Below are positions 52,930 to 54,034 of a stretch of 64,000 bases of DNA, piece by piece. Every line of letters starts with the position of its first letter. Positions within the stretch are counted from its first letter, which is position 1. The stretch is from Blepharisma stoltei ATCC 30299. Taxonomy: Eukaryota; Protista; Ciliophora. The notes beneath the pieces are model-generated. The model saw only the letters and a program-made list of their open reading frames with translations, made no database searches and was not told where the DNA came from. The stretch covers positions 1 through 64,000 of the forward strand of contig CBFDEM010000025.1 of the NCBI GenBank assembly GCA_965603825.1. Reading direction: 5' to 3'. The translations under genes were made by a program, and so were the position numbers.

Positions 52930-53517
52930 ATGGAAAGTTTAATAGATGAAGAGACTCCTGAAGAATTAGAAACTGCCTTTCAAAGGTTCAGAGAATTTGC
53001 CCCCACTTTGGAATCTGCTTTGTCTACTCAGAGAATCCTTAAAGAATACAAAACTTTAGTTCGGACGAAAGAATGCAAAGGAATCCACACTGAATTTGAA
53101 AATGGCTCGAATATCTATGTTTGAAATATTCATATTGACATGAACAAATATCAAATTTCTTCTATATTAAATAGTGATTTTGATGCATATGTACAAAGAA
53201 ATCCAGGTAGAAAAAAAGAACTTGTTTTCGAGGTCAGATACGGTCAGAACTATCCTTCAGAGCCTCCATTTGTCAGAGTTATAAGACCGAGGTTTTCATT
53301 TCGCACTGGCCATATCACGATAGGAGGTTCAGTTTGTATCCATGGTTTAACTACTTCAGGTTGAAATCCAGATAGAAACATCGATGGGATACTTATGGAA
53401 ATTTTGTCAAATATAGCGGAAGGCCATGGAAGACTTGATTGCTACCACGACAGAGACTACACTCTCAATGAAGCTGAAATCGCGTTTAGACGAGCCCTCA
53501 GGGTTCATGGATGGTAA
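52930..53517 (+). CDS. UBE2Q-like ubiquitin-conjugating enzyme
   Basis: QRILKEY, NIYV(W), YPSEPPFVRVIRPRF, GHITIGGSVC (catalytic Cys), LTTSG(W), HGW-stop. Confidence 0.88.
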
Positions 53518-53537
53518 TTCAAATAATAAAAATAAAA

Positions 53538-53966
53538 ATGGATTTTCTTAAAGAGACTCTTCTAGAGCCTCTCCGGCCCAGCTCATGGCAGCCAGGCAAC
53601 TACTCATTCATGTGAATCTACCTAATTATTTTTGTGATTACTTATTATTTTTACCACAAAATTTCAAATTATATTTACATGAAAAAGACTTTTTCCACAC
53701 AAAGAACTTCCTTATATGAAGACCGAAAAAAATCTTCATGGGAAAGAAGGGAAAAAGAGCTTGAAGAATTGAGGATAAGGCAGGAAGAAGAAAAAGAGAT
53801 GAACCAAGAAGAGGAAGAAGAGAAAAAACAAGAAGAAGAAAGGAAAGAAAGGGCGAGAAAAAGAGATGCGTATTTTAGGGAAACTATGAATGCCCCAACT
53901 AGGTATAAACCAAATATGGAGGAAAGGTATCCAAATGTTTGTAAGCGATCTAGAGGATGACGCTAG
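53538..53966 (+). CDS. SelS/SelK-family selenoprotein candidate (142 aa; C-terminus ...VCKRSRG-U-R-stop)
   Basis: Single N-terminal TM, charged coiled coil, R/P/G tail, penultimate TGA 53958-53960, TAG 53964-53966, SECIS-like hairpin downstream. Confidence 0.8.
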
Positions 53967-53986
53967 ACCAGAAGATTGTTTAATAA

Positions 53987-54034
53987 AGCTCAAGTGACGG
54001 ATTACCCAAAATTGGAAGGGTGATCTAGAGAGCT
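53987..54034 (+). promoter_or_regulatory. SECIS element (GUGA type)
   Basis: AGCT-caa-G-TGAC-GGATTACCC-AAAATTGGAA-GGGTGATCT-AGAG-AGCT: tandem GA/GA core, 9-bp helix II, apical AAA 10 nt after TGA, short helix I. Confidence 0.8.

Follow-up and report, generated by a model that had tools for sequence, protein, structure and literature searches.

A SelS-like selenoprotein gene of Blepharisma stoltei with UGA codons of two predicted meanings

The SelS-like gene and its two UGA codons

The window, a stretch of 64,000 nucleotides from Blepharisma stoltei whose 5′ start consists of ~2.4 kb of CCCTAACA repeats, contains an ORF of 142 codons that runs from an ATG at 53538 to a TAG at 53964-53966 and has TGA at codons 26 and 141. 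A first-pass annotation of the window had marked the internal TGA (53613-53615), the penultimate TGA, and the TAG, all of which are confirmed. UGA is read as Trp in the macronuclear genome of this ciliate (bioRxiv 2021.12.14.471607). In the assembly covered by our genome-wide searches (41.46 Mb, 64 contigs), from which the translations of two loci are identical to NCBI B. stoltei proteins, TGA makes up 36% of Trp codons, and counting UGA as sense raises the ORF cover of the 64-kb window from 0.48 to 0.84. The features of the locus, with the evidence for each in parentheses, are the following.

52930..53517, + strand: upstream neighbour, an E2/RWD-like gene with two in-frame TGA (ORF and weak Pfam matches)
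53538..53966, + strand: CDS of a predicted SelS-like single-pass membrane selenoprotein, 142 residues, no intron needed (ORF, orthologs, ESM Atlas)
53607..53663, + strand: predicted transmembrane (TM) segment, residues 24-42 (hydropathy; aligned hydrophobic segments in orthologs)
53613..53615, + strand: internal UGA, codon 26, predicted Trp, with the SECIS core 378 nt downstream (ortholog column)
53958..53960, + strand: penultimate UGA, codon 141, predicted Sec (TGA in 10/10 ortholog loci read and in the paralog)
53964..53966, + strand: UAG stop (UAG ends 5/5 intact penultimate-Sec genes found in the genome)
53969..53978, + strand: post-stop element CARAAGAUUG, +9 to +18 after the Sec UGA (10/10 bases in five genes)
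53987..54034, + strand: type I SECIS with GUGA core (fold and covariation)
53987-53991/54030-54034, + strand: SECIS helix I (5/5 paired)
53994-53997/54028-54029, + strand: SECIS core (GUGA/GA)
53999-54007/54018-54026, + strand: SECIS helix II (9/9 paired)
54008-54017, + strand: A-rich SECIS apical loop of 10 nt (fold)

The stop of the E2-like gene and the selenoprotein ATG are separated by a gap of 20 nt (53518-53537), and in a second heterotrich, L060, the ortholog likewise lies close behind its upstream gene, though a different gene.

The protein looks like SelS in its language-model features and layout. SelS is a small protein with an N-terminal TM segment and a penultimate Sec that follows Gly (PMC3628699), and the window protein shares this arrangement, with 142 residues, one N-terminal TM segment (24-42), and a predicted G-U-R end. 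The TM segment is moderately hydrophobic, with a best 19-residue Kyte-Doolittle mean of 1.4 at residues 24-42, and these residues align with hydrophobic segments in every full-length ortholog. In the ESM Atlas, the top assignment for ortholog P0003 is Selenoprotein S (score 0.91, 198 shared features), with which 9 of the 10 best family matches agree, a result that is a lead and not an alignment. Selenoprotein S is also the automatic UniRef name of the in-genome paralog. These features and the layout support the comparison with SelS made in the first-pass annotation. The charged helical region after the TM segment resembles the p97-binding helix of SelS by eye only, and the SelS tree is poorly resolved. 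A PDB search gave no SelS match for the protein, and the Pfam profile Selenoprotein_S (PF06936) matched neither 11 family members at E ≤ 0.1 nor the window piece at E ≤ 1; because of this missing profile match we write "SelS-like" rather than SelS. A word-based protein search with the single sequence found no relatives; ten were recovered by exhaustive search and three by profile search.

The meanings of the two UGA codons are decided by the ortholog columns. At codon 26, the column of 13 homologs has Trp in 12, TGA in one, and Cys in none, and the in-genome paralog has TGG at this position. At codon 141, in each of 10 ortholog DNAs the TGA is separated from the stop by a single codon (by two in one of them), and a SECIS starts 32-35 nt after the TGA. 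Predicted proteins from other species end at Gly, exactly where the codon-141 TGA sits, and no ortholog has TGG there. Judging by conservation, UGA is thus most likely Trp at codon 26 and Sec at codon 141, the two assignments that the first-pass annotation had made.

The SECIS core begins with GUGA at 53994, leaving 33 nt between it and codon 141; the first-pass annotation had placed it 34 nt after the UGA, which is the same position, and had rightly called the spacing short in comparison with mammals, in which the minimum is 51 nt. The element is well paired and folds with z = -4.0, none of 200 shuffles being equally stable, and a lax SECIS pattern has only two matches in the 64-kb window. 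An Rfam scan returned no SECIS family match to the window element. Among 16 heterotrich-like SECIS, at every one of 11 helix positions 14-16 of the 16 sequences form a pair, and ten of the 11 show four or five pair types, these pairs having been counted by a script that takes the best-pairing 3′ core and therefore leans towards pairing. The script counted from core-anchored positions, the MAFFT alignment being out of register. This covariation, together with the absence of a penultimate TGG, is what had been expected of heterotrich orthologs in the first-pass annotation. The UGA-SECIS spacing is nearly fixed, at 31-35 nt in 16 genes. By its fold and covariation, the window SECIS is real. Two ortholog SECIS with a spacing of 32-33 nt have variant cores, GUGC/AA and GGGA/GA (L059:5540-5600 and L055:2424-2484). 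The NCBI proteins of two sister genes have a W-R end at the Sec site, in keeping with an earlier warning that gene predictors would err on such genes. Public annotation puts Trp at these Sec sites, and heterotrich selenoproteomes are hidden as a result.

Two more heterotrichs with UGA = Trp, L060 and the Stentor-like L057, have dual-UGA orthologs. The L060 protein (run SRR24908292) is 49% identical to the window protein, and its gene has TGA at the conserved Trp sites 17 and 26 as well as the penultimate TGA; the assignment of UGA = Trp to L060 rests mainly on this SelS-like gene, two long neighbours having 11 TGG and no TGA. In L057 (from a lake metagenome, ENA ERZ19026408), the TGA is found at Trp12. 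Trp residues of the syntenic Stentor locus L058, which has 44 TGG and no such TGA, are matched by in-frame TGA in four L057 genes, and the L057 Sec1 protein is 88% identical to Stentor coeruleus Sec1. Published papers give Stentor the standard code, and on these alignments L057 may represent an independent, undescribed reassignment of UGA to Trp in a Stentor-like ciliate.

Selenocysteine machinery, other selenoprotein genes, and a GPx control

Four components of the Sec machinery, among them the tRNA-Sec and EFSec named in the first-pass annotation, are present in the genome: tRNA-Sec(UCA) (75.6 bits), SepSecS, eEFSec, and selenophosphate synthetase (SPS). A tRNA-Sec has also been reported for B. 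stoltei, along with a tRNA-Trp that has a 4-bp anticodon stem, an eRF1 that keeps weak UGA recognition, and depletion of UGA near stops (bioRxiv 2023.10.09.561518); by the counts in the same report, UAG accounts for ~18% of stops. The SepSecS gene (G000:C40:826143-827327) has an in-frame TGA and a TAG that probably lies in a tiny intron. Introns of 15-16 nt are the norm in this genome, and two of 15 nt occur in a SelT-like gene (L030, G000:C40) that appears to be a Cys form. The SPS gene (G000:C13:721728-722546) has no TGA within the match. With SelT-like in a Cys form and SPS without TGA, the selenoproteome may be small. Searches of the genome for the Rdx family and MsrA found no further Sec genes; one MsrA paralog has TGA at a conserved Trp and lacks a SECIS.

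Penultimate UGA codons were found in other families. TrxR ends in G-C-UGA-G-stop and has a SECIS of the same design 33 nt on. A PUB-domain protein (L066:1516-2154, minus strand, in G000:C54, and L144) has a K-K-G-G-U-R end and a SECIS. Ten orthologs end at that Gly, the one whose DNA was read has TGA and a SECIS, and NCBI gives W at the Sec site. PUB selenoproteins are listed for algae (PMC7539508). A 49-residue protein (L065:1360-1509, in G000:C41) with a myristoylation-like MG start, a P-C-W-T-G-U-R end, and a SECIS has no Pfam match and is a candidate for a new, small selenoprotein; ~480 nt further downstream is a tandem copy that has decayed. At G000:C35:719463-719501, minus strand, there is a SECIS whose 9-bp upper helix is paired throughout, with neither the post-stop element nor a penultimate UGA at the usual spacing.

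GPx provides an internal control. Of eight GPx genes, one has TGA at the catalytic site, and a SECIS is found in that one only, being absent from the Cys paralogs. The distance from its Sec codon to the SECIS core is 379 nt, against 378 nt from the Trp-UGA of the window gene to its core, and the two SECIS agree in type and in the lengths of helix and loop, so distance and gross shape alone cannot set the meaning of UGA. The two in-frame UGAs of the window gene lie at sites conserved for different amino acids; position-dependent decoding, as proposed in the first-pass annotation, is too simple an account of Sec at 379 nt and Trp at 378 nt. Either Sec is delivered only to the near UGA because of the short tether, or codon 26 suffers some misreading; the 379-nt reach of the GPx SECIS would leave room for some Sec at codon 26. 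In the other five selenoprotein genes, all 11 Trp codons are TGG (p ~0.007 at 36% TGA), and in the six genes together TGG accounts for 13 of 14 and TGA for one (p ~0.017). This bias suggests that an internal UGA in a SECIS mRNA carries some cost, although the avoidance of TGA for Trp in selenoprotein genes could instead reflect high expression.

An element shared after the stop codon

The post-stop element was first noticed in a comparison of TrxR with the window gene, in which ten bases located two nt past the stop are identical. The full arrangement, UGA-NNN-UAG-NN-CARAAGAUUG, is shared by all five intact penultimate-Sec genes found in the genome (the window gene, its paralog, TrxR, the 49-residue protein, and the PUB-domain protein), which belong to four unrelated families. 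When the genome was searched for the element bases plus a SECIS core, in a pattern without TGA or TAG, nine places were found against one for the reversed control, and at five of the nine TGA-NNN-TAG stands upstream in the exact position and the SECIS is genuine. Genome-wide there are six copies of the pattern TGA-N3-TAR-N2-CARAAGATTG, namely the five genes and one chance match in another frame, and none of 23 one-mismatch element matches in the genome has a SECIS. Because two of the five genes had defined the motif, a motif-free scan (TGA-N3-stop plus SECIS core) was needed. It returned 72 rows, six of them with a paired helix as judged by eye, and these six are the same five genes and the decayed tandem duplicate of the small gene, which has frameshifts, stops, and a degraded element. 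After 151 ordinary stops the element match is at most 6/10, and all ten bases would match at a given position by chance with a probability of ~4 in a million. The element had been missed by the first-pass annotation and is the part that may be new; we did not find it described in the literature searched, a search that many subscription papers lie outside.

The distribution of the element is restricted. It is absent from the GPx mRNA with internal Sec, and ten penultimate-Sec genes of other heterotrich-like species, L057 included, match it at 0-6 of ten positions, with 3/10 in L057; L060 matches at 7/10 (p ~0.01). Since the Stentor-like L057 has UGA = Trp and a dual-UGA gene without the element, the element is not needed in every lineage, and we rejected the idea that it marks every heterotrich with UGA = Trp. 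A metagenome scan for the motif plus a SECIS core gave 51 matches, none with a SECIS helix, and all of them are thus chance matches.

A small hairpin can be drawn for the element, with AAGA in the loop and compensatory changes in the outer pairs; it is located at +9 after the UGA, a position that fits the 6-9 nt range of the SRE. This hairpin is stable in three of the five genes and weak in two, including the window gene (pair probabilities 0.07-0.17), and the sequence therefore seems to matter more than the fold. A hairpin downstream of the UGA does not separate UGA = Trp species from standard-code species, and pairing of the element with tRNA-Sec was no better than that of shuffles (p 0.15 and 0.78). 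The five genes all have Sec as the penultimate residue, so that the register of the element to the UGA is inseparable from its register to the stop.

Decoding of the two UGA codons and comparison with known systems

The best explanation of the locus, and as a whole a probable one, is a functional SelS-like ER-membrane selenoprotein in which UGA is used twice. By default, UGA would be read as Trp by a near-cognate tRNA-Trp(CCA) with its 4-bp anticodon stem. At codon 141, the SECIS 33 nt away would deliver eEFSec from just outside the mRNA entry channel of the ribosome, and the fully cognate Sec-tRNA(UCA) would outcompete the weak Trp decoder to give the G-U-R end. Codon 26 would be mainly Trp because the short tether serves the nearby UGA. 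Footprints of terminating ribosomes extend 11-12 nt past the A-site codon (PMC4967479); with ~12 bases after codon 141 inside the ribosome, the element at +9 to +18 would sit at the channel mouth when the codon-141 UGA occupies the A site, and the SECIS would lie just outside. The SRE and the SelS SL1 are located 6 and 9 nt after their UGA, respectively (PMC3628699). The element would most likely help in the manner of an SRE or SPUR, by making the ribosome pause or by attracting a factor, so that Sec wins over Trp and over weak termination where the UGA adjoins the stop; this is the least certain step, and our confidence in it falls somewhat short of even. The protein probably acts like SelS in ER-associated degradation with p97, and its C-terminal Cys-x5-Sec may be a redox pair, both by resemblance. 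We speculate further, with considerable doubt, that Blepharisma evolved a sequence-specific switch, common to unrelated genes, and a fixed SECIS tether that together mark one UGA as Sec in a genome where UGA otherwise means Trp. With similar doubt, such a switch might be likened to the bacterial Sec signal adjoining the UGA, as a eukaryotic equivalent recognised by a protein or by the ribosome at its mRNA entry channel.

Decoding could instead be statistical: each UGA would yield a mixture of products, codon 26 receiving a certain amount of Sec and codon 141 giving Trp or termination to a substantial extent, and the cell would tolerate this. The nearly equal GPx and window distances at the same SECIS geometry favour such a reading, as do the avoidance of UGA for Trp in selenoprotein genes (13/14 TGG, p ~0.017) and the ability of some mammalian SECIS to support Sec at any position (PMC3737529). 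We nevertheless regard it as unlikely, in view of the UGAs at invariant Trp sites in three UGA = Trp species (codons 26; 17 and 26; 12), which argue for tolerance, and of the unambiguous decoding of UGA by position in Euplotes (PMC3737529). Far less probable is a relic SECIS, with codon 141 read simply as Trp or stop. In its favour, UGA routinely encodes Trp, public annotation has W at the site in sister genes, and eRF1 retains weak UGA recognition; however, the SECIS is perfectly paired and the machinery intact, the catalytic C-terminal motif of TrxR needs Sec, no ortholog has TGG at the codon-141 site, and the decayed duplicate of the small gene shows the pattern expected from loss of selection. 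Splicing of a 15-nt intron at 53941-53955, or an intronic internal TGA, would yield a different protein. The ORF does contain one GT..AG 15-mer in a genome in which introns of 15-16 nt are the norm, but the branch-point A that both introns of the SelT-like gene carry six bases before their 3′ end is missing from this 15-mer, its removal would take away the conserved K/R-G C-terminal motif, and no GT..AG 15/16-mer spans codon 26, all of which makes an intron highly improbable.

A separate question is whether the element takes part in the choice of Sec at all. It may instead secure termination at the UAG or block early cleavage and polyadenylation, a role to which we give appreciable but clearly minority weight. 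The element is part of the 3′ UTR and keeps a constant distance to the UAG. Heterotrich 3′ UTRs are extremely short (PMC4967479), and termination in Euplotes needs poly(A) proximity, with selenoprotein mRNA as an exception (PMC10235951). Against such a role, the GPx mRNA needs a UTR of SECIS length yet lacks the element, and ten other heterotrich-like penultimate-Sec genes have the same UTR layout without it. Either role, securing termination or keeping the 3′ UTR long enough for the SECIS, would be compatible with dual decoding.

Since the Euplotes work it has been asked how the ribosome assigns one of two amino acids to the same codon within a single mRNA. B. stoltei offers a natural matched pair within one genome, a Sec-UGA at 379 nt and a Trp-UGA at 378 nt from near-identical SECIS, and an invariant 10-nt element that the C-terminal-Sec mRNAs carry and the single internal-Sec mRNA that was examined lacks. 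With the matched pair and the element, the decoding choice becomes directly testable in a ciliate that can be cultured. A physical lower limit of the UGA-to-SECIS tether may be reflected in the 31-35 nt spacing; such a fixed spacing across genes was not found in the literature searched.

Euplotes crassus is likewise a ciliate in which one mRNA has UGAs of two meanings, Cys and Sec, assigned by position (Turanov 2009, cited in PMC3737529); Sec is restricted to the C-terminal region in thioredoxin reductase. The default there is Cys via a cognate tRNA, whereas in Blepharisma it would be Trp via a near-cognate one, and the stop-to-SECIS distance is 124-138 nt compared with ~27 nt in the Blepharisma gene. 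Dual decoding was tested with 75Se in Euplotes, whereas that of the Blepharisma gene is predicted from sequence. Condylostoma magnum and Parduczia are related ciliates in which UGA also means Trp and Sec and, unlike in Blepharisma, stop ("triality"), and their TrxR has a short UGA-SECIS distance, below the 51-111 nt minimum (PMC4967479). The short spacing, whose novelty the first-pass annotation had implied, was thus already published; the sections of that report available to us describe no same-mRNA case, cross-family 31-35 nt spacing, or linker motif. The implied novelty of a dual Trp/Sec UGA likewise gives way to Blastocrithidia SelTryp, in which the routine Trp codon UGA is also Sec in one selenoprotein gene (PMC12153298), both cases being deduced from sequences. 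SelTryp is a different protein in a trypanosomatid, and the available text describes no UGA-proximal cis element or fixed spacing for it. Mammalian SELENOS resembles the window protein as a single-pass protein with penultimate Sec, and SL1/PSL and SPUR of SELENOS and the SRE of SELENON are cis elements 6-9 nt after the UGA with position-dependent recoding (PMC3628699, PMC6844570). Those elements are gene-specific and compete with termination, whereas the 10-nt Blepharisma element spans four families and its competitor would be Trp. A dual Trp/Sec UGA in one gene is therefore a known phenomenon of which the window gene is a new example, and the shared element, the fixed 31-35 nt tether, and the matched GPx control are, on present sequence comparisons, the new and testable parts.
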